Part shown: positions 9,512 through 64,000 of the stretch, piece after piece
How positions within the stretch are numbered: the stretch's first letter is position 1
How the letters are laid out: every line of letters begins with the position of its first letter
DNA from: Vicugna vicugna
Taxonomy: Eukaryota
Direction: 5' to 3'
Assembly: GCA_013265495.1 (NCBI GenBank)
Contig: MU060486.1
Coordinates: forward strand, 434,001 to 498,000
Length of the DNA stretch: 64,000 nucleotides
Notes under the pieces: model-generated
Told to the model about the DNA's origin: nothing
Database searches by the model: none
What the model saw: only the letters and a program-made list of their open reading frames with translations
Position numbers and translations under genes: made by a program

Positions 9512-9715
9512 NNNNNNNNNNNNNNNNNNNNNNNNNNNNNNNNNNNNNNNNNNNNNNNNNNNNNNNNNNNNNNNNNNNNNNNNNNNNNNNNNNNNNNNNN
9601 NNNNNNNNNNNNNNNNNNNNNNNNNNNNNNNNNNNNNNNNNNNNNNNNNNNNNNNNNNNNNNNNNNNNNNNNNNNNNNNNNNNNNNNNNNNNNNNNNNNN
9701 NNNNNNNNNNNNNNN
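9512..9715. other. Assembly gap (204 N)
   Basis: Run of n from 9512 to 9715. Confidence 1.
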
Positions 9716-27690: not shown

Positions 27691-30139
27691 TTAAACAGGT
27701 GGATGTTTACAGAACACCCAGTGAAGCTTAGGGACACCGCACAACTTTCTTAAGGGTGCCCTGTCGGTGAGACGGGGCAGGCAGGGGTGGGACTCAGGCC
27801 TCCCTACTGCGAGTCCAGCAAGTGCTTCTTTACATCATATTTACCTTGTGTCCAAGCACCATGGAAACTTGTTGCTGTGGTACCCTCTGGCATGGATGCT
27901 TTTTCCAAGAATAAATCGGGTTCTGTCTCCAGGCTCCCCATACCACTCATAGCCAACAAGAGGAGAATCAGGAAGGGGAGGAGGGAGCAGTGGGGGTGAG
28001 GTCACGGCTCCTGTCTGGTCCCCAGCCCTCGACCGGCTTCCTGCACCTGGTGGAGCGATGCTCGTGCCAAGGCTGTGGGGAAGGGCGGGGGCGTGGGATA
28101 AGGATGCTCCGGGCATCTCCTCGAGCTCCCACACAAGGCCCTTTTGTGTAGGGGCCGAGAGGGAGGCCTGGGCGTCGGCCGTGTGCCAGAAACAGACCCG
28201 CTCAGGCCCTCCAGCTGTGGCTCCTCGCCCGCCCCGCCGGCCCCTGCCCGTCCAGCTGTGGGTCCAAAGCAGAAGCACAGCCTCCCCGCTCCCCCTCCCC
28301 TTAGCCCCTGGGTTTTCTCCAAGCCCAGAGGGGCCTTCCTCTCTGTCCTGTTCTCACCTCTGCCCTCCTCCCCTCCCTGACGAGCCCCAGGTGCACACTG
28401 TCACTCCTACCTGCCTGCTCCTCCTCCTTGCCTTCCCGGGGAGACCCCATCCCCCAGTGCGGCCCCCGCTGTCCCTGGGTCACGGACATGCCCGCTGTCA
28501 CCTCGTCACCCCCACTGAACACCCACCGCCCGGCAGGCGCGGGGTCCGGATGGCAGGGAGCGAGGCAGCCCAGCACCGCCTGTCCCACAGGGCCTGTCTG
28601 TCGCTGGTCAAGCCCACTCCTCACTCCCACCACTCGGCTTCTGCAGGCTCGAGCCTGGGCCACGGCCTCTCCCAGGCCCCCCGTCGACAGGGTTTGCCAA
28701 GTGTCCCTCAAGTGCTCGGCCTGATCCTCCCACTGGACGCTAAGCTCTGGGGACAGCTGGTGGCCCGTCCCTCTTCTGCCCTCCTCCTCAAAGGTGCTCA
28801 GCGGCTGCTTGTTACTGGAGAAGCCTTCTTCCGGGGCCTCCTGAGCTCAGGTCCTTGACTCTCTGTTTTCTCCTCTCCAGACGGACTTGTTCTCAGGCTG
28901 GTTCCCCATAACTGCCTCGTCCTCTGCCCACATCAGCCTTTCGCCGATGTCAGTGGAAGCCATGACTCCGCGTGGCTCTGCGGAAGCATCTACGCGGTAC
29001 TGGAATGCCTGGTTATCAGCAGTCTCTGGGGCGAGCCAGGTCCAGTTCCCTCCTGCACGACCCAGGAGGGGCACAGAACCCGGCTGCTGCGTGAGGCCGC
29101 CGGAGAGTCTGAGGCAGAGGCCTGGCTGTGAAAACCTTCAGATTCCTCCCCTGCAGACCTTCATTCCACTGCTGCCCACTGTCCTGTCTATAGGTGGACA
29201 GAGTATGACCCAGACCCCCACCTTGCTAGGTGGGCTCAGCAGGGCCTGGCTCCTGGCTGTCCTGAAAGCCGAGTGTGCGAGTGGGACTGCAGCTGTCCCT
29301 CTGCTCTGGTGCCTCGTTACTGGACCTCAGGCCCTGGGCAGGCAGGGCCGACGCAGGGGGGGGTCAGTCCTAGGGGTCCCGTGAGTCACATTTCCTTGTG
29401 AGGGATGAGGGGTTTCTGAGGAGGGGAGGCTGTGTGTTCCTGCAGGCACTTCACAGGGACGGCTGTCATCCGGGCTCCTGAGCGCTGCAGGGTGGATCTG
29501 ATGCAAAGCAGGGACCTCTTTTCTGTGTTCTTGGACTAAGCCACAAAACCACGGAACGTGTCTTGTTTGAGATTGTTCAGAGCTGGCTGGGAAAGCCAAG
29601 AAGAAGGAGGGGGGTTGGTAAGGCTGGGGGCTGGCATCTGGTTTTCAGACAAAATCATCCTACATCGTGGGCCCACGGTCTCTTGGGCAAGATTGTGTTC
29701 CCTTTCCAGCCAGACAAGAAATGAATACAGTTTGGTTAAAATTCCAAGAACTGGCTTATCAATTGATTTCTATGAAAGATGCCTCAACATGTCTTTAAGA
29801 ACTCTGATGTAAGGCTCAGCACGAGAGGATTCTGCTCTGCAGACACATGGCCCGGCTGTGGGCGACGGTCACCATCCACCCTGCACGCGTGGGCTGGCCG
29901 TGCGCTGTGCAGCAGTGTCGTGCTTGGAGATGGTAGGGTCCTGGCGGACCCTCTCCCAGGCTTGCGGAGTCATCTGGAGGCGCTGTCGTAAAATCACCCT
30001 CCATCTCCAGGCCAGGTACCACCACCGTGTAACCAAGACAGCCTGTGGGGGAAACCGTGACCGAGTAGGGGAACACTGGATGTGCTGGGAAATTTGAATC
30101 ATAACAAGGTTTGAGTTTTCATAAGAGAAGTCTTCAGCA

Positions 30140-34299: not shown

Positions 34300-34363
34300 A
34301 TGATTTGGTATGTGGCCACTTTGATAGCAAGTGTGATCAGCGCCCGAGGTCTTGCGGCTCAAG
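34300..34363 (+). CDS. IGSF9B: IGSF9B coding exon 1 (signal peptide)
   Basis: ATG at 34300 reads MIWYVATLIASVISARGLAAQ(G), matching the IGSF9B N-terminus as recalled (human MIWYVATFIASVIGTRGLAAEG). Donor AAG|GTGAGT at 34363/34364; 64 nt, phase 1. Confidence 0.97.
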
Positions 34364-41174: not shown

Positions 41175-41965
41175 CTGCACATGCTCACACATGCATGCAC
41201 GCAAGCACTCATGTACACATCCCTGTGCACATGGACACACACGTGCACACACAAGCACACATTTACACATCCCTGTGCACATGCACACACATGCACACAA
41301 GCACGCGTGTACACATCCCGTACACGTGCACACACAAGCACACGTGCACACATCCCTGTGCATGTGCATGCAAGCACATGTGTACAGGTCCCTGTACACA
41401 CACACGCAAGCACACGTGTATACATCCCTGTGCACACGCACACACATGCACACGAGCACACATGTACACATCCCTGTGCCATTGCATACACGTATGCGCA
41501 CACAAGTACACATCCCTGTGCATGTGCGTGCAAGCACATGTGTACAAATCCCCGTACACATGGACACACATACACATCCCTGTGCACACACACATGCACA
41601 CATGCACGCAAGCACGCGTACACATCCCTGTGCACATGCGCACACACATGCAAGCACACACGTACATGTCCATGTGCACATGTACACATGTACGGGCACA
41701 CAAGCACACGTGCACACATCCCTGTGCATGCACATGCAAGCACACGTGCACACATCCCTGTGCATGCTCATGCAAGCACACGTGTAGAAATCCCCGTACA
41801 CATGCATACATACACATCCCTGTGCACACACACATGCACACATGTACACACCCCTGTGCACATGCACACACGCACGCAAGCACACGCGTACACATCCCTG
41901 TGCACATGCACACATATATGCACACACAAGCACACGTGCACACATCCTTGGACGCATGCACACAC
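41175..41965. repeat. CA-rich minisatellite (~19 units of ~27-50 bp) in intron 1
   Basis: Recurring anchor ACACATCCCTGTGCA followed by variable CACA/CATG/CAAGCACACGTGT. Confidence 0.9.
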
Positions 41966-43604
41966 GTTACTTTCCCTACTCTTTGCCCTGGGCGCAGGAT
42001 CAATGTGTGGGTGCGGGAGGTGGGCTCTGTCCCTGTCTTCTGCCCCTGGGGCTGTGGGGGTGGCGGCTGCAGCTCTGCAGACTTTCCCTAAGGGGCTGGG
42101 ATTCGAACTTCGCCTAAAGCAGGGCTGGGAGGGTTGGGAACCTGCTGGGGCCTCAGGCAGGTGAGGCCAACACTCTGCTCTGCTCCAAAAATACTCTGTG
42201 ATCTTAGCTCTTTCTCTAGAAAACAGTGATGTCACCGGTAGCCAATCAGCTTCAGTAAGGGTTGCCTCCTCCTCCTCCTCCTCCTCCTTCCGCAATTTGC
42301 AGGGTGGAGAGGGAGCCAGAGCGGGAGGGAGAGAGGGAGAGACGCACAGAGACACACGGACAGACAGACACGCAGAGACGGAGGGCCGCGGAAGAGCAGG
42401 CACAGCCCCTCCCCACACAGGAGGAGCGAGCCCCTGTGTCCCCCAACACACACACAGACACAGAGCAGGGAGAGACAGGCAGGTAGATGGGATCAGCCAT
42501 GTGGAGGGGGAGCTAGAGAGACAGACAGACAGACAGACATGCAGAAGGAGCCAGAAACAGAGAGAGAGACGGTGGGGCCAGGCAGGAGCTCACAGGGTCA
42601 GGGGTGTGGTCAGAGGCAGGCCCAGGGGCACGGGACAGTCAAGATGCGTGCTTCTGTCTTGGGTGTCCCCCTTGTCCCCGGCTTTCAGCCCCTGGAGCAG
42701 CAGCTGTCCCGGGTGCTGCCTGCAGGGGCCCAGCGAGGACTTAGGGGTGGGGGTTTGGGGACCCCGAGGGAAGGCAGGATGGAGGGGCCTCCCAGCCATC
42801 CCCTTCGGTGGGAAGTAAGCCAGACAAGGTGACTTCGTGGGCGTGGATGCCTGGTGTGGGAGTGAAAGTCAGGCTGGGGTGGGCCTGCAGGCCCCGTTTA
42901 GGGGTCCAGGAGCTGCTGCCGAGGCGCAGGAGGTGGTGCCTGGGTTAACCTCTCCTCGGTGGGGGTGGCTGGGGTGGGGGTGGGTCTCTCCCCGCCTGGT
43001 CCTGTCCCTTCCAGGAGGACAGCTGTGCCCTAGCCAGCCTGTGCTCTGTCCTCTGCCAGAGGTGGGGTGTCCCCGCCACCGTCCTGTCCTGATGGTGATG
43101 CCTGGGGCTTCTCAGCCTGGCAGGCTTGTGGCTTGGAAGCTGCAGGGCTGGTGGCCCCTCCTCTCTCCCCTCTGCGGCAGGCGCAGCAGACGGACGGACA
43201 GACAGTCGGATGAGGAGGGCAGAGGCCGGCTCAGGCGGGTGGTTTTCCCCCGTGCTGCCCTGAGCAGCCTCTGCTCAGCTTGTGAGGGATTCCCCGCTTC
43301 TGCATGGAGTGGTCTTGTTTTGTGCTGCAAGCGCCAGGCTGAGCTGGGGGTGGGGTGTGGGAGGCTGGCGGGCTCTGCGGCTTCTGCAGCTCTAGCGGGG
43401 AGCATCCGGCACAGGCGGATGTCCCATGTCTACCCGCGGCGACAGCACCCGGCCACAGTGTCCATGGAGGGTCTGTGACCCCCCACTTTTCCGGTGGCCA
43501 CACCTGTCAGACTTGGCAGGGGTGTCAGGGGAGGGGTGGCCCCCGGGGCTGCGGGCAGGGTCTCCTGTCACTCCTTTCCCGAGTCCCACCCCTCTGTCCC
43601 GCAG

Positions 43605-43802
43605 GTGCCCACGGCCTGCGAGAGGAGCCCGAGTTCGTGACAGCCAGGGCCGGCGAGAGTGTGGTCCTGCGATGCGACGTGGTCCACCCGGTGACGGGGC
43701 AGCCCCCGCCCTATGTCGTGGAGTGGTTCAAGTTCGGGGTGCCCATCCCCATCTTCATCAAGTTTGGCTACTACCCACCCCACGTGGACCCTGAGTATGC
43801 AG
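43605..43802 (+). CDS. IGSF9B: IGSF9B exon 2 (Ig1 N-half)
   Basis: ctctgtcccgcag|GT GCC CAC...; reads GAHGLREEPEFVTARAGESVVLRCDVVHPVTGQPPPYVVEWFKFGVPIPIFIKFGYYPPHVDPEYA; donor CAG|gtaagg; 198 nt. Confidence 0.97.
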
Positions 43803-45096
43803 GTAAGGTCTGCACCATCCGCCCTGCCGTCCCACCTGGCCCTGGGGGCCCCGCACCGTCCCTCCTGCTTGTGTCTTGTGGCCTCCCGTCTTTCCTGCCG
43901 GGTCTGTTCCTGTGTTTTCCGGTCTCTGCACTGTCCTCCATCCTTTGCGCCTTGGTAGGTTTTAATTAAGTGGTGGGAGGAGCCAGAAGAGGAGAGGGGC
44001 AGATGGAAAGCCTTCTGAACAGCCGTGCTGGCTGCCTGGCTGAGGCCGGAGGAAGAGCAGGAGGAGGAGGAGGGAGGCCCAAGGAGCCCCCAGCCAGGGG
44101 GAGAGGAAGCCTGCCGGGAGGGTGGCTCCGCAGAAGCGGCTGCCGCAGGTTCACCCTGTCCGGCTGCGCCCACTCCCTCCCTCTGCCCTGGAGCTGGGGC
44201 CTCGCCTGCCGGCCCGCCCGTCCGTCCGTGAGCCCCTGGGCACGAGGAAGTGTCCGTGCCGCTCTGGCCTCCCTCCTCCTGGCTGCTGTCTTGCTCTGCA
44301 GTTACTCCTGCCAGCGGGGCCTCAGTGTGAGTCAGCGCCGGGGCCTGGCCACCAGGGAGGAGGGCGCGGGCCGGTGTGCGCGTGTGAGTGTGCACGAGCA
44401 TTTGCAGGTGTGAGTGTGTGTGTGTTAGGCTTTAAAGGAAGAGAGGAGGCTGGCCGGATGCTGCTTTTAGCCCTACCTCTGCCTCCCGGGGTCTGCGTTG
44501 GTCTTTGCTGGAGAGCTCGTCTCCCTGCCCTCTCCCGGTCCCTCTCCCTCCTAAGCCCGTCTCTGCTGCGGCTGGTTCTGGCTGTCTGCTTTCAGGCAGA
44601 CTGCTGGTGTCAAGGGCACAAGGAGGGAAGCAGTGACACTGGGCGAGGGCTGGGCTGAGGTGGAGGCCGAGGGGAGGGGGACCTCTGGGGCTGCTCTGGG
44701 GAAGGGAGGCTGTGCCCATCTGTCTGCTCTGCTCCTGCCTCCTGATGGGAAGGGGCGGCGTCGTGGGTGGCTGGGCCTGGCTCTGGCTACGTGAGCTCTC
44801 TGCTCTCCCTGGCCTGGCGGCAGGACTTGGGGGGACCCCAGCACCCTGGTCCCCAGGCTGCCTTTCCTCTGCCCCCTGCCAGGAGGCCAGGCAGAGAGGG
44901 TGCTGGCGTGGCAGTCTTGGGGACCAGCTGGGATGGGGGTGCCCAGAGTCCCTCCATCCTCTGTCTCCCTCCCCACCAGCCCTGCACTCCTCCTGCCTCT
45001 CCTTTGCCGCCAGAGCTGGAGCTGCCCAAGGTGGGCTGGGGTTGCGAGGGGCACTCTGCCCCTGGCCCTGAGTTCCCTTCGTCCCCTCTGCTGCAG

Positions 45097-58682: not shown

Positions 58683-59124
58683 GTAACCGTGCCACTCACC
58701 CCAGCACAGAGCTCCCTGCACGGGGCCCAAGAGGAACTGAGGAGACAGCAGTGTGCTGTGGGAAGGTGTTCCTACCTCCTTGGAAGAGAACTAAAAATAT
58801 GTTTTGTAGTATCTTTTTAAAGACACTGTGTTACTAAAAAGATAATTACATTTTCTTCCTCCTCCTTTCCAGTGATTCCCATTCGTTTTCCATTTGAGGG
58901 ACTCAATTCATAGGATCAGAAAGCTCTGGGCCCACTTGCTCTGCCTCCGGCCCTTGGGTCAGGAGGGCTCTTTATGCGACACTTGTCCCTGAAATGACTG
59001 TGCACTGGAGCAAGGGGACATGGCCATCGCCCTGGGGACACCTGCTGGGTTGGAGGGCAGCGTGAGGGGAGGTGTGCAGCGGCCTCAGTCTCCCTCGCTG
59101 TTGTCCCCCCTCCCCCTGCTGCAG

Positions 59125-59351
59125 CATTCCCTGTCACAACTCCAGAACCCCTGGTGCTGGTTACCCCACCGAGGTGCCTCACAGCCAACCGGACCCAGCA
59201 GGGCGTGCTCCTGTCTTGGCTCCCCCCTGCCAATCACAGCTTTCCCATCGACCGCTACATCATGGAGTTCCGTGTGGGAGAGCGCTGGGAGACGCTGGAG
59301 GACGCCATCCCCGGCACCGACGGCGACTTCTTCGCCAGGGACCTGTCACAG
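59125..59351 (+). CDS. IGSF9B: IGSF9B exon 14 (FN3-2 N-part)
   Basis: cccctgctgcag|CA TTC CCT...; AFPVTTPEPLVLVTPPRCLTANRTQQGVLLSWLPPANHSFPIDRYIMEFRVGERWETLEDAIPGTDGDFFARDLSQ; donor CAG|gtgagg; 227 nt. Confidence 0.96.
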
Positions 59352-59864
59352 GTGAGGTGCCTGGCTTTCCCTTGCTGCTCTTCTTGGTTCTGGAGGGGAT
59401 GTGAGTCTAGAGTCACTGGAAGCTCTGAGTGACCCGGCTCAGGTGTGTGAGGTCAGGCCGTGCACTGTGCCACACATCCACTCCTGTTCTCCCAGATCCA
59501 CTGCCAAGGTCAGGACCCTCAGATCCCGGCAGCCTCGGCCCCACCGATGCAGGGCCAGCTCTGGCCTTGGGGGGATTCCGGCTGCCGACACAAGCCAGGG
59601 ACGCCGGGTGCGCGATTAGCCTAGCTGGGTCACCAGACGCTGGCCTCAGCCACCTGCTGGAGTCTGACGGGGGCGGGGCAGAGAGCGTCCCAGAAGGATT
59701 GACCTGTGCCTTTGCCCAGGGAGGGGCTCCTCCTTTACCAGTTCTGAGCGCCTGGAGGAGAGCACGTTGTCTTTTCCCCAGCTGACCACCCTTCAGCCTT
59801 GCCATCCCTCCAGCAGCTCATGTCACGGATGCCGACAGTCTCGCCCGGCTTCCTTCCCTGGATG

Positions 59865-60046
59865 CCCTAGAGCTGGGACTGGCTCACGTCGGCTCCTGAG
59901 AGCCGGTGTGTGCGTTTCTTCTCAGCTCTGCTTTCTGTGACCCCATGTGCGTAGCCTGAAATCAGCCATGGTAATTGGCAAACGCTCCAAGCCAGGACTC
60001 TGTAAAACCAGAGCCCTGGTTGTTAAACACTCGGGGCACAGCACGG
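59865..60046 (+). mobile_element. MER63A-like hAT DNA transposon remnant (intron 14)
   Basis: ggctc...ggctcctgagagccg...gtagcctgaaatcagccatggt..aattggcaaacgct...ccagagccctggttgttaaacac matches recalled MER63 words gtagcttgaaatcggccatggt / aattggcaaacgctac / gagccggttgttaaaca. Confidence 0.7.
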
Positions 60047-60161
60047 CTGCGGGTGTCCAATTCCGTGTGGGATGCCTGCGGAGGTGGGAGGGGGGTGTTG
60101 TGGTGGGCTGGTGTCTGTCTCGGGCCCCCTGGCTGACGGGGTGCTGTCCTTGGGGCCGCAG

Positions 60162-60246
60162 GACACGTGGTACGAGTTCCGCGTCCTGGCTGTCATGCAG
60201 GATCTGGTCAGCGAGCCCAGCAACATCGCCGGCGTCTCTAGCACAG
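60162..60246 (+). CDS. IGSF9B: IGSF9B exon 15 (FN3-2 C-part)
   Basis: ccttggggccgcag|GAC ACG TGG...; DTWYEFRVLAVMQDLVSEPSNIAGVSST; donor CAG|gtaccc; 85 nt, ends in phase 1. Confidence 0.96.
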
Positions 60247-62015
60247 GTACCCTGGGGTGGGCTCCTCCTGCGGCTAGAGCCGTGCATGGGAAGAGGCTGA
60301 GCTGGAAGGAGAGAGCACGTCCTAGCCTTCTTAAGCCCGTCAGATCCGTGCTCTGCTCCACGGTGGGCAGGCTTTCTCCACCTGTTCCTGTCGGGACCTC
60401 AGAGAGAGACCCGGCTGAGCTTCCCCTTGGAGTAGTCAGAGAACTGAAGTCTTTTTGCTGCAAAGTCTGTTCCTCCACCGCCATCCTCTGTTGTCGGGCG
60501 GGCTGGGGGAGGGGTGGATTGGAGCAAAGGGCCGGTAAGCAGGTCAGCGAGTCCTTACTGACGCCTCCTGTAAGACAGTGTCGTAACTATGGAGGTTTCC
60601 TTTGGAAAATTGCTGTTTGGTGTTTTCCTCCACTCCCTCCTCTCACTAGATCTTTTTAGGCTAAATAAAGCCGGCTCCCTAGCATTTTCTCCCCTTCTCT
60701 CTCTTCTCTTGGCGCTGGTCCCATTTCTACACGTCTTTCTCCAGCTCCAGCCCCTGATGGGTCCCTCCCTCAGACGTGGTTCCCTCGGTTTGGGAAGAGG
60801 CTCTTAGTGAGTCAGCAGCGTCATGTTTCCTTAGGCGCTGCTCGCACAGAGACCCCCCGGGGCCGATTGGCAAGAGCTTGGCCAAGCAGCTGTGTGTGGG
60901 GCTCGCGGAGATACTAGGCAGCGGAGCCGGGTGGGCAGATGGGGAGGGCAGGCGAGAGAGCACGGGGGGGAGCGCAGTGTGACTTCTGTCTCGGGTATTA
61001 GGCACCGTGGGGCTGGTTTATTTTTTCTACACAAAGTACTTGCTGTAGGCAGCAGAACCGAGCATGCTTCCATCCTGGCTTCCCTCCAGGGAGGAGAGCT
61101 GCAGCCAAGGCCAGAACGGAGGACCAGAGCATTCTGTGGGCACCTCTTGTGAACTGCTCTGCCTTCAGCAGCTTTATGTCTGGTCTTTGAAAGGAAACAT
61201 CCGTAGTCGGAAGACTCCTCGTGGTGAACGGGGATGCAGCTACCTTAGCATTCCCTGTCTTTGAGTCTCCCGTTTCCAAAGGCTGAGCATGTGTTTTCTG
61301 CTCAACCAGTCAGCACGACGTGGATCATTTTAACCCACTGTTACCATTGACGTGGTGATGGATTCTGGCCAAATCTATCAGAACTTGTAGGCTTCCCCTC
61401 TGATGAACCTGAAGAGAGGCGCTTGCTAACACACTGTCTTAGTTGGGCCAGTTCAGCCTGGCTCTGTCACTCATGAGCCCCGCAGACTTGGCACACGGCA
61501 AGGCTCGCTCCTGCCTGGAGAACACAGACACTGTTTGACGCACCTGCCAGCTCCAGCACTGTTCCCGGGTGGCCGGGACATGCCAGTCTCCCCTGCAGAA
61601 GCCCCTGCCATAGTGTGATGACTTAGGATGGGCCTGGATTCTGAAGCAGGAACCCCTCCCCTGCAGAGTTTCCCTTCGGGGTCCTTGCTCTGTAGAGAGT
61701 GCAGGTGGGGGTCGGAATGGCCATGTGGACACTTAGGCTCTGACGGGCAGTGTCCACTCAGCAAGTTATGATGTTTTCATGGGGAGAGTGTGCTGGCTGG
61801 TTATGGGCAGACGGCACCAGATGAGCACAGATCGTCCCCGGAGCCATCGGCCCACAGGGATGAGGCACAGGTGGCGTTTCTTCCTCATGAGCCAGGCAGC
61901 GATGCCTTGGCTCCCGGGAGCCCCTCTTCTTCCTCTCCCTGCCATTCACACTTCTTCAGTGACAGGGCCTGAGCCTTCCAGATGCTGCTGCCTGGGGAGG
62001 GGTCAGCACAGGTAG

Positions 62016-62147
62016 ACGGGCTGGCTCGGCCAGTGTTGGCCGGAATCGTGGCCACCATCTGCTTCCTGGCCGCGGCCATCCTGTTCAGCACCCTGGCCGC
62101 GTGCTTTGTCAACAAGCAGCGCAAGCGGAAGCTCAAGCGCAAGAAAG
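62016..62147 (+). CDS. IGSF9B: IGSF9B exon 16 (transmembrane); 5' boundary uncertain and apparently truncated
   Basis: Reads DGLARPVLAGIVATICFLAAAILFSTLAACFVNKQRKRKLKRKK (TM helix plus polybasic stop-transfer); donor AAG|gtgggt. The expected upstream DIFPQPDLTE codons and acceptor are not present. The start given is the nearest in-frame AG (tag at 62013-62015). Confidence 0.85.
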
Positions 62148-62500
62148 GTGGGTGTCCGGCCGGCCCCCACCCCATGCAGCCCATCCCTTCCAGTGCCCCC
62201 ACACAATCTCCATCTGGAGAAATGCCCATTTTCCTCAGGGTCCCCTTGAAAATAGGGACACGGGGACCCTGTGAGCAGAGCTGCCAGTGGGACTTGCTTT
62301 GAAAGTGGAAGGAAGGGTGGTGGGGAGCCTGGAGGGACGGGACGGAGGGTGCAGGCGGCCCGCTGGAGGCACAGGGCCCTGCCCCCAGACGTGCTCACAC
62401 CGAGGGGGCTGCTTCCCTCGCGGCTGTGCCCCCGGCCCTGCTGACCCCGGGTGGCTGTGTCTTCGCGGCCTCAGCAGGCTCCCTCTGCTCCCTTCTCCAG

Positions 62501-62546
62501 ACCCTCCGCTCTCCATCACGCACTGCAGGAAGAGCCTGGAGTCTCC
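62501..62546 (+). CDS. IGSF9B: IGSF9B exon 17
   Basis: ctcccttctccag|AC CCT CCG...; DPPLSITHCRKSLESP; donor TCC|gtaagt; 46 nt. Confidence 0.95.
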
Positions 62547-63102: not shown

Positions 63103-64000
63103 CTTGTCCTCCGGCAAGGTCAGCCCCGAGAGCACCCGCACACTCCGGGCCCCGTCCGAGTCCTCCGATGACCAGGGCCAGCCGGCGGCCAAGAGGATGC
63201 TCAGCCCCGCGCGCGAAAAGGAGCTGTCCTTGTACAAGAAAACAAAGAGGGCCATTGGCAGCAGGAAGTACAGTGTGGCCAAGGCTGAGGCCGAGGCCGA
63301 GGCCACCACGCCCATCGAGCTCATCAGCAGGGGCCCTGACGGCCGCTTTGTGATGGACCCCTCGGAGATGGAGCCCTCCGCCAAGACCCGGCGCATCGAG
63401 GGCTTCCCCTTTGCGGAGGAGACCGACATGTACCCCGAGTTCCGCCAGTCGGATGAGGAGAACGATGACCCGCTGGTGCCTGCCTCTGTGGCCGCCCTCA
63501 AGTCCCAGCTGACCCCCCTGTCGTCCAGCCAGGAATCCTACCTGCCACCACCAGCATACAGCCCTCGGTTCCAGCCTCGTGGCCTGGAGGGCCCTGGTGG
63601 CCTGGAGGGCCGGCTGCAGGCCACCGGCCAAGCCAGGCCGCCCGCCCCGCGGCCCTTCCACCACGGCCAGTATTATGGGTACCTCAGCAGCAGCAGCCCT
63701 GGGGAGGTGGAGCCGCCCCCCTTCTACATGCCAGAGGTGGGCAGCCCCCTGAGCTCCGTCATGTCCTCCCCGCCCCTGCACGCCGAGGGGCCTTTTGGCC
63801 ACCCCACCATCCCTGAGGAGAACGGGGAGAACGCTTCCAACAGCACGCTGCCCTTGACTCAGACGCCCACGGGCGGGCGCTCCCCGGAGCCCTGGGGCCG
63901 GCCGGAGTTCCCCTTCGGGGGCCTGGAGACCCCGGCCATGATGTTTCCCCACCAGCTGCACCCCTGCGACGTGCCTGAGGGTCTGCAGCCCGCGGCCGGC
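63103..64000 (+). CDS. IGSF9B: IGSF9B exon 18 (cytoplasmic tail; continues beyond window)
   Basis: cttcctgtcccccag|C TTG TCC...; open to the window end: LSSGKVSPESTRTLRAPSESSDDQGQPAAKRMLSPAREKELSLYKKTKRAIGSRKYSVAKAEAEAEATTPIELISRGPDGRFVMD...FPHQLHPCDVPEGLQPAAG. It is absent from the ORF track, presumably because no stop is reached. Confidence 0.96.

Follow-up and report, generated by a model that had tools for sequence, protein, structure and literature searches.

An 85-bp deletion takes the splice acceptor and conserved linker codons from the transmembrane exon of IGSF9B in a Vicugna genome assembly

The window, a 64,000-nt stretch of a Vicugna vicugna assembly (GCA_013265495.1, contig MU060486.1, positions 434,001 to 498,000), carries the gene for IGSF9B (protein turtle homolog B) on its + strand; the signal-peptide exon lies at 34300, and the window ends at 64000, midway through the large last exon. 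A tblastn search with the full-length orthologues P0011, P0186 and P0182 recovered every exon of the gene, in order, over 34300-64000, and the spliced model runs through 1069 codons without a stop. The colinear exons encode, at high identity, the Ig domains, the two FN3 domains, the single transmembrane (TM) segment and the long cytoplasmic tail by which an IGSF9B orthologue is recognized, and the Pfam Ig, I-set and fn3 families are recorded for the near-identical protein P0186. One diagnostic element is missing: the juxtamembrane linker, D-x-F-P-x-P-[DE]..., with which the TM exon opens in orthologues, is absent from the window. At some distance from the gene, a run of 204 Ns (9512-9715) corresponds to an assembly gap or to masked sequence; its odd length hints at scaffolding with estimated gap sizes, and so at an older hybrid assembly. 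The features surrounding the lesion are collected in Table 1.

Table 1. Features at the 3′ end of IGSF9B in the window (a slash marks an exon boundary; Y, pyrimidine fraction)
Feature	Position	Strand	Remarks
IGSF9B exon 15 (DTWYEFRVLAVMQDLVSEPSNIAGVSST)	60162..60246	+	End of second FN3 domain, ...NIAGVSST; phase 1; donor AGCACAG/gtaccc
Intronic pyrimidine tract and cag	61921..61959	+	Best-looking acceptor left, out of frame; Y 0.80; conserved in L001, non-native acceptor
In-frame cryptic acceptor candidate cag	62004..62006	+	Would give SST-AQV-DGLARP, net -7 aa; Y 0.40
Second copy of 10-mer AGCACAGGTA	62005..62014	+	First copy at 60240-60249
Deletion junction	62013..62014	+	Exactly 85 bp of dromedary (L001 29716-29800) absent; blastn chain and alignment
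Junction-made tag	62013..62015	+	Candidate in-frame acceptor (SST-DGLARP, -10 aa) or stop for 61959/61960-spliced transcripts; Y 0.25
TM exon remnant	62014..62147	+	134 of 162 native nt; encodes (E)DGLARPVLAGIVATICFLAAAILFSTLAACFVNKQRKRKLKRKK; donor G/gtgggt, phase 1
Second deletion relative to dromedary	62203..62204	+	47 bp, C-rich, intron 16, about 56 nt past the TM-exon donor; L001 29992-30038
Exon 17 (DPPLSITHCRKSLESP)	62501..62546	+	Intact; starts in phase 1
Large last exon, start (cytoplasmic tail, LSSGKVSPES...)	63103..64000	+	Intact up to the window end

A first-pass annotation of the window had reported that homology of the TM exon starts abruptly at GAC GGG CTG (62015), and translation of the region bears this out: the coding sequence restarts there as DGLARPVLAGIV...KRKK, over the segment 62015-62146, with the donor at 62148. 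Exon 15 ends in phase 1, as had been stated, with AGC ACA G/gtaccc at 60246. The same annotation had seen no DIFPQPDLTE codons in intron 15, and indeed DIFPQPDLTE-like coding was found neither in any frame of this intron nor, by tblastn with the full-length orthologues, elsewhere in the window.

What has been lost was defined by comparison with the dromedary locus L001 (GCA_000803125.3 CM016659.2:500736-545353), which belongs to the North African dromedary assembly (PMC6618069) and was reached via a cluster mate of P0186, which shares the private residues of the window and yet has the linker. The window is colinear with this locus at 95-97% identity; exon 15 is identical (100%) to L001 27862-27946, and the TM exon remnant is 99.2% identical to L001 29803-29934, with protein matches at 100% identity. 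In the blastn chain, window 59000-62013 pairs with L001 26701-29715 and window 62014 picks up at L001 29801, and alignment of intron 15 and the TM exon with an orthologue, a check recommended in the first-pass annotation, gives the same exact 85-bp gap. Of the missing segment, 57 nt come from the 3′ end of intron 15 (GGGGCAGGGGTGGGGAGGGAGGGAGGAGCTCACTAGTGCTCCCCCAACCCCGCCCAG) and contain a G4 motif together with pyrimidine tract and CAG acceptor; the other 28 nt open the exon (ACATCTTCCCACAGCCGGACCTCACCGA, read as AC ATC TTC CCA CAG CCG GAC CTC ACC GA) and encode DIFPQPDLT and part of the next E. In the dromedary, the native acceptor lies at L001 29773 and the exon begins CCCAG/AC ATC TTC..., continuing without a break into GAC GGG CTG. 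The junction in the window is clean, with neither microhomology nor Ns, and the bases just before the breakpoint (tgctgcctggggaggggtcagcacaggt) are ordinary intron, located 58-85 nt upstream of the acceptor in the dromedary. The deleted intron part resembles the translated intron that precedes the linker in other mammals (G-rich run, ...THAC..., P-L-P-A), so that the state of the window is the derived one.

The extent to which the linker is conserved was assessed by searching the 44-residue exon against 1.84 billion representative proteins. Dozens of short ORFs from genomic contigs of many vertebrates were found in this way, and a word-index search yielded about a hundred more; in all of them, D[IVFP]FP[QP]P[DE]...[DE] directly joins (D/E/G)GLARPV on a single piece of DNA, with translated intron on both sides. 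Annotated full-length proteins of snakes, birds, monotremes, rodents, primates, whales and carnivores read SSTDIFPQPDLT[DE][DE]GLARP. Altogether, the motif is present in 271 of the 274 vertebrate sequences fetched, with a variant in two more, and it is absent from one fish model only; two further camelid proteins, from another Camelus-type assembly, also have it. In the fish model, P0042 (784 aa), alone among the fetched sequences, FN3 domain and TM segment are joined with neither SST nor linker between them (…ISDSSN-VGLARPVV); it may be an isoform or a mis-annotation. The dromedary gene models P0186 and P0253 have a normal linker region and are over-predicted, carrying translated intron pieces (e.g. 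GWPTEPGSPRPQ, NAGVCPEGLGIEEALVSPHPRG..., YGPLVSLSHIPIPSQELATCIMGDILEWW) and an extra G in KRKKGDPPL. The annotated IGSF9B protein of the window's own species was not among the cluster representatives in the protein searches. Linker and TM segment thus share one exon in 271 of 274 vertebrate sequences, as they do in two Camelus assemblies, and the loss is accordingly derived and specific to the lineage of the window or to its assembly.

These data also bear on an outcome that the first-pass annotation had named as a possible refutation, namely that the linker is not normally part of the TM exon. If it were encoded by a small alternative exon of its own, nothing would be missing from the window, and such an arrangement agrees with the phases, which allow a 30-nt phase 1-1 cassette, and with the tag at 62013-15, which joins cleanly as SST-DGLARP. 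However, about 100 genomic ORF fragments from a wide range of vertebrates read through linker and TM segment without interruption, the dromedary exon runs straight from CCCAG/AC ATC TTC... to GAC GGG CTG, and none of the phase 1-1 AG...GT cassettes of the window's intron 15, listed exhaustively, resembles the linker. The one-piece genomic ORFs and the dromedary DNA refute a separate exon, to which we give practically no credence; that the linker normally belongs to the TM exon held in the 271 of 274 sequences as well as in the dromedary DNA.

If the deletion is real, the native branch-point region, the pyrimidine tract and the AG would all be lost, and the consequences depend on the acceptors that are left. 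According to the first-pass annotation, only two AGs next to the TM segment are compatible with the phase of exon 15, and this proves correct: a TGA at 61970-72 closes the TM-segment frame upstream, so that phase-1-compatible AGs are limited to 62005-06 and 62014-15. Acceptor strength was expressed as the pyrimidine fraction at -23..-4, a position-weight matrix built from 14 acceptors being too noisy for ranking. The 14 real acceptors of IGSF9B range from 0.50 to 0.85, all above the values of the two in-frame candidates, in keeping with the earlier remark that both lack a polypyrimidine tract. The annotation had further singled out the cag at 61957-59 as the best-looking acceptor, out of frame and leading to a stop; its pyrimidine fraction falls in the range of the real sites, and an exon started at 61960 does translate as VTGPEPSRCCCLGRGQHR, followed by TAG 62013-15.

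Under a real deletion, 61957-59 would thus be the nearest strong 3′ splice site, and its use would add 52+4 nt to the transcript and bring the TAG into frame 132 nt before the next junction, a configuration predicted to elicit nonsense-mediated decay (NMD). Alternatively, the TM exon could be skipped in frame, because both of its neighbours are in phase 1, and the predicted protein (SST-DPPLSITHC...) would have no membrane anchor; with the weak tag or cag as acceptor, the protein would instead stay anchored and lose 10 or 7 residues of its stalk. Deletions of splice acceptors or exon boundaries that activate cryptic 3′ splice sites or exon skipping are a well-known class of disease alleles. 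A real deletion here would resemble them, with branch-point region, tract, AG and exon start gone and with cryptic AGs or an in-frame skip left. A side observation concerns the segment 61921-62013 (L001 29623-29715), where a strong pyrimidine tract and CAG are followed, 52 nt on, by CAG/GT (GTGGGG in the dromedary); this arrangement is conserved between both camelids and has the look of a pseudo-exon or poison exon, 52 nt long and frame-shifting, just ahead of the native acceptor.

The identity of ten bases just before the breakpoint with the end of exon 15 and its donor had also been pointed out, with the caution that it might be due to chance. The 10-mer occurs in the window only at 60240 and 62005, where 0.13 occurrences would be expected by chance. 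However, nine of its ten bases (AGCACAGGT) are native intron at the homologous position in the dromedary, the final A being supplied by the deletion junction, so the repeat is a chance resemblance. A templated copy of the end of exon 15, considered for the 10-mer and for a more extended GTC..AGCACAGGTA similarity, is ruled out, the motif being ancestral intron: a templated duplication calls for a repeat that is new to the lineage, and GGGGTCAGCACAGGT stands at the same position of the dromedary intron.

Outside the deletion the gene is intact and under strong constraint. All 18 exons of the window are equal in length to those of the dromedary, with no stop and no further lesion, and the comparison of 1069 codons reveals 29 synonymous and 3 nonsynonymous differences (dS 0.038, dN 0.0012, dN/dS 0.033; protein identity 99.7%). 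The synonymous divergence is in line with a South American camelid. A gene unconstrained over the whole lineage branch should have gathered some 40 or more nonsynonymous changes, and on these codon counts decay of any appreciable age can be excluded; among the 18 exons compared with the dromedary, neither a raised dN/dS nor additional frameshifts or stops were found. The first-pass annotation had left the choice between a lineage-specific deletion, including incipient gene decay, and a local assembly error. A derived 85-bp deletion is demonstrated by comparison with the dromedary and with about 270 vertebrate sequences, whereas the part of the proposal that spoke of incipient decay is contradicted by the dN/dS ratio.

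Over about 29 kb of alignment with the dromedary, the indels of at least 8 bp comprise 17 segments absent from the window and 6 absent from the dromedary; the 85-bp gap is the largest of them and the 47-bp gap in intron 16 the second largest. The two are found within 280 bp of each other, the 47-bp gap lying 190 bp downstream, and they flank a single 134-nt exon island in a region of 63-70% GC. The left edge of the 85-bp gap coincides with the first G of a canonical G4 motif (L001 29716-29734), and the 47-bp gap overlaps a C-rich G4-type motif. A systematic dropout of G4 motifs from the assembly is unsupported, since the window retains 45 of the locus's 48 motifs intact. Hairpin-mediated slippage was likewise discarded: in the minimum-energy fold the deleted intron part does pair its G-rich arm with its C-rich one, but the fold does not surpass that of shuffled sequence (z = -1.2) and takes in only 55 of the 85 nt. 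Two other differences from the dromedary were noticed, one being a 1-nt difference at +7/+8 of the TM-exon donor. The other is a stretch of about 2.6 kb of intron 1 (window 41691-44376, L001 9400-11955) that is not colinear and is flanked by TG/CA microsatellite-type indels; it probably represents repeat turnover.

Sequencing runs were compared with the window by their share of sampled words. Six DNA runs from two studies hold 0.85-0.95 of the words of 60100-62200 and 0.94-1.00 of those of 63160-64000, the best run reaching 0.95 and 1.00, respectively. Such shares are compatible with two false junctions, which would cost about 0.03, and equally with ordinary SNPs. For RNA-seq runs X1-X8 and X25-X28 (‘reproductive system metagenome’) the shares are 41-46% across the mostly intronic stretch and 74-79% in the last exon; eight RNA-seq runs share an identical last-exon value, 0.74, which suggests full coverage together with fixed differences, as from a close relative or another breed. 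Exact look-ups of two ORFs crossing the junction and of one control ORF beside it gave no record for any of the three, the control included, and the 24-mer left of the junction had no hit in a JGI metagenome scan. In the literature, we found no paper linking IGSF9B with alpaca.

Isolated lesions in GC-rich exons are common in draft assemblies, and local mis-assembly or mis-polishing of GC-rich sequence gives rise to false gene lesions in draft mammalian genomes. From the combined evidence we infer, with moderate confidence, that the deletion is best explained by a local assembly error in a G-rich/C-rich stretch and is not a property of the species. Such an error would have removed the 85 bp at 62013/62014 and would be accompanied by the 47-bp gap on the other side of the same exon; the animal would then make the normal protein, SST-DIFPQPDLTE-DGLARP..., from a transcript reading ...AGCACAG/ACATCTTCCC.... 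As in known false lesions, we are dealing with a single isolated defect in a constrained gene, at about 70% GC, on G4-type motifs and with a second gap close by, and this pairing of gaps around one exon suggests a local assembly or polishing problem. In addition, the linker is contiguous with the TM segment almost universally in vertebrates and in both Camelus assemblies, so that a real loss would have no precedent in about 450 My of vertebrate history; the gene is otherwise under strong constraint, with three amino-acid differences and no other lesion; nothing compensates for the loss, the in-frame acceptors scoring 0.25 and 0.40 against 0.50-0.85 for real ones; and none of the DNA runs contradicts an error, the best of them holding a smaller share of words across the lesion than in the last exon. 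On the other hand, and unlike many false lesions, the junction shows no Ns, repeat or microhomology, a picture equally typical of errors and of real end-joining deletions, and the intact state of nearly all the other G4 motifs speaks against systematic dropout. The word shares of the six DNA runs (85-95%) indicate that the surrounding sequence is sound, and the viability of Igsf9b knockout mice (PMC6302093) makes a real crippling allele conceivable.

That the deletion is real in alpaca/llama, and constitutes a natural loss-of-function or short-stalk IGSF9B allele in a domesticated camelid, seems to us a tentative possibility, which can take two forms. One, which we hold unlikely, is a young allele, private, polymorphic or very recently fixed in alpaca/llama, whose transcripts would be spliced mainly to 61957-59, with predicted NMD, or would skip the exon in frame and lose the anchor, making it a loss-of-function or hypomorphic allele of IGSF9B. 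The clean junction, set exactly on the G that opens a canonical G4 motif, would suit such an event, G4 motifs being plausible sites of replication-associated deletion, and so would the acceptor strengths, the frame and stop, the exon phases and the survival of the knockout mice; as there is no other decay, only a very recent event fits. But the prior for a crippling lesion is low in a gene so constrained and in a segment kept in 271 of 274 sequences, loss of function by a large deletion is rare in any one given gene of one animal, and the nearby 47-bp gap requires a second or a complex event. The other form, quite improbable in our estimate, is a tolerated deletion fixed in South American camelids, with the tag at 62013-15 or the cag at 62004-06 as acceptor and the stalk shortened by 10 or 7 residues. 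Both sites are in phase, the tag regenerates the Asp codon (G/AC), and strong purifying selection on the rest of the gene is what a working protein leads one to expect. However, these acceptors have no pyrimidine tract and lie downstream of a strong tract and at least four earlier AGs that are expected to be preferred; an old event should have strengthened the new site, of which the sequence bears no trace; and the linker is otherwise universal. All other explanations together have a very slight chance of being right.

Returning to the local assembly error that we favour, its main lesson would be practical: this exon of IGSF9B would be unfit for claims of gene loss or selection, and probably so would other GC-rich exons of this assembly, and gene models at this place would need repair from reads. 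Either way, the window encodes an IGSF9B orthologue with 99.7% protein identity to the dromedary gene, unlike which it lacks the first 28 nt of the TM exon and its acceptor and cannot encode DIFPQPDLTE; it shares with the dromedary locus colinearity, exon lengths, the intronic pyrimidine tract and the AGCACAGGT motif, and differs from it by the 85 bp (29716-29800) and the 47 bp (from 29992) that it lacks. IgSF9b is an adhesion protein of inhibitory synapses (PMC3678166, PMC6302093); mice in which Igsf9b is knocked out are viable with altered amygdala inhibition, and deleting the gene from the amygdala of Neuroligin-2 knockout mice is anxiolytic (PMC6302093). If the deletion is real, this IGSF9B would stand alone among the known vertebrate ones in lacking the conserved DIFPQPDLTE stalk and the native acceptor. 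Either a domestic animal would carry a psychiatric-risk synapse gene that is naturally knocked out or hypomorphic, or the stalk would be proved dispensable; the allele would be a candidate for effects on behaviour or tameness and would test, in nature, the role of the universally conserved juxtamembrane linker.
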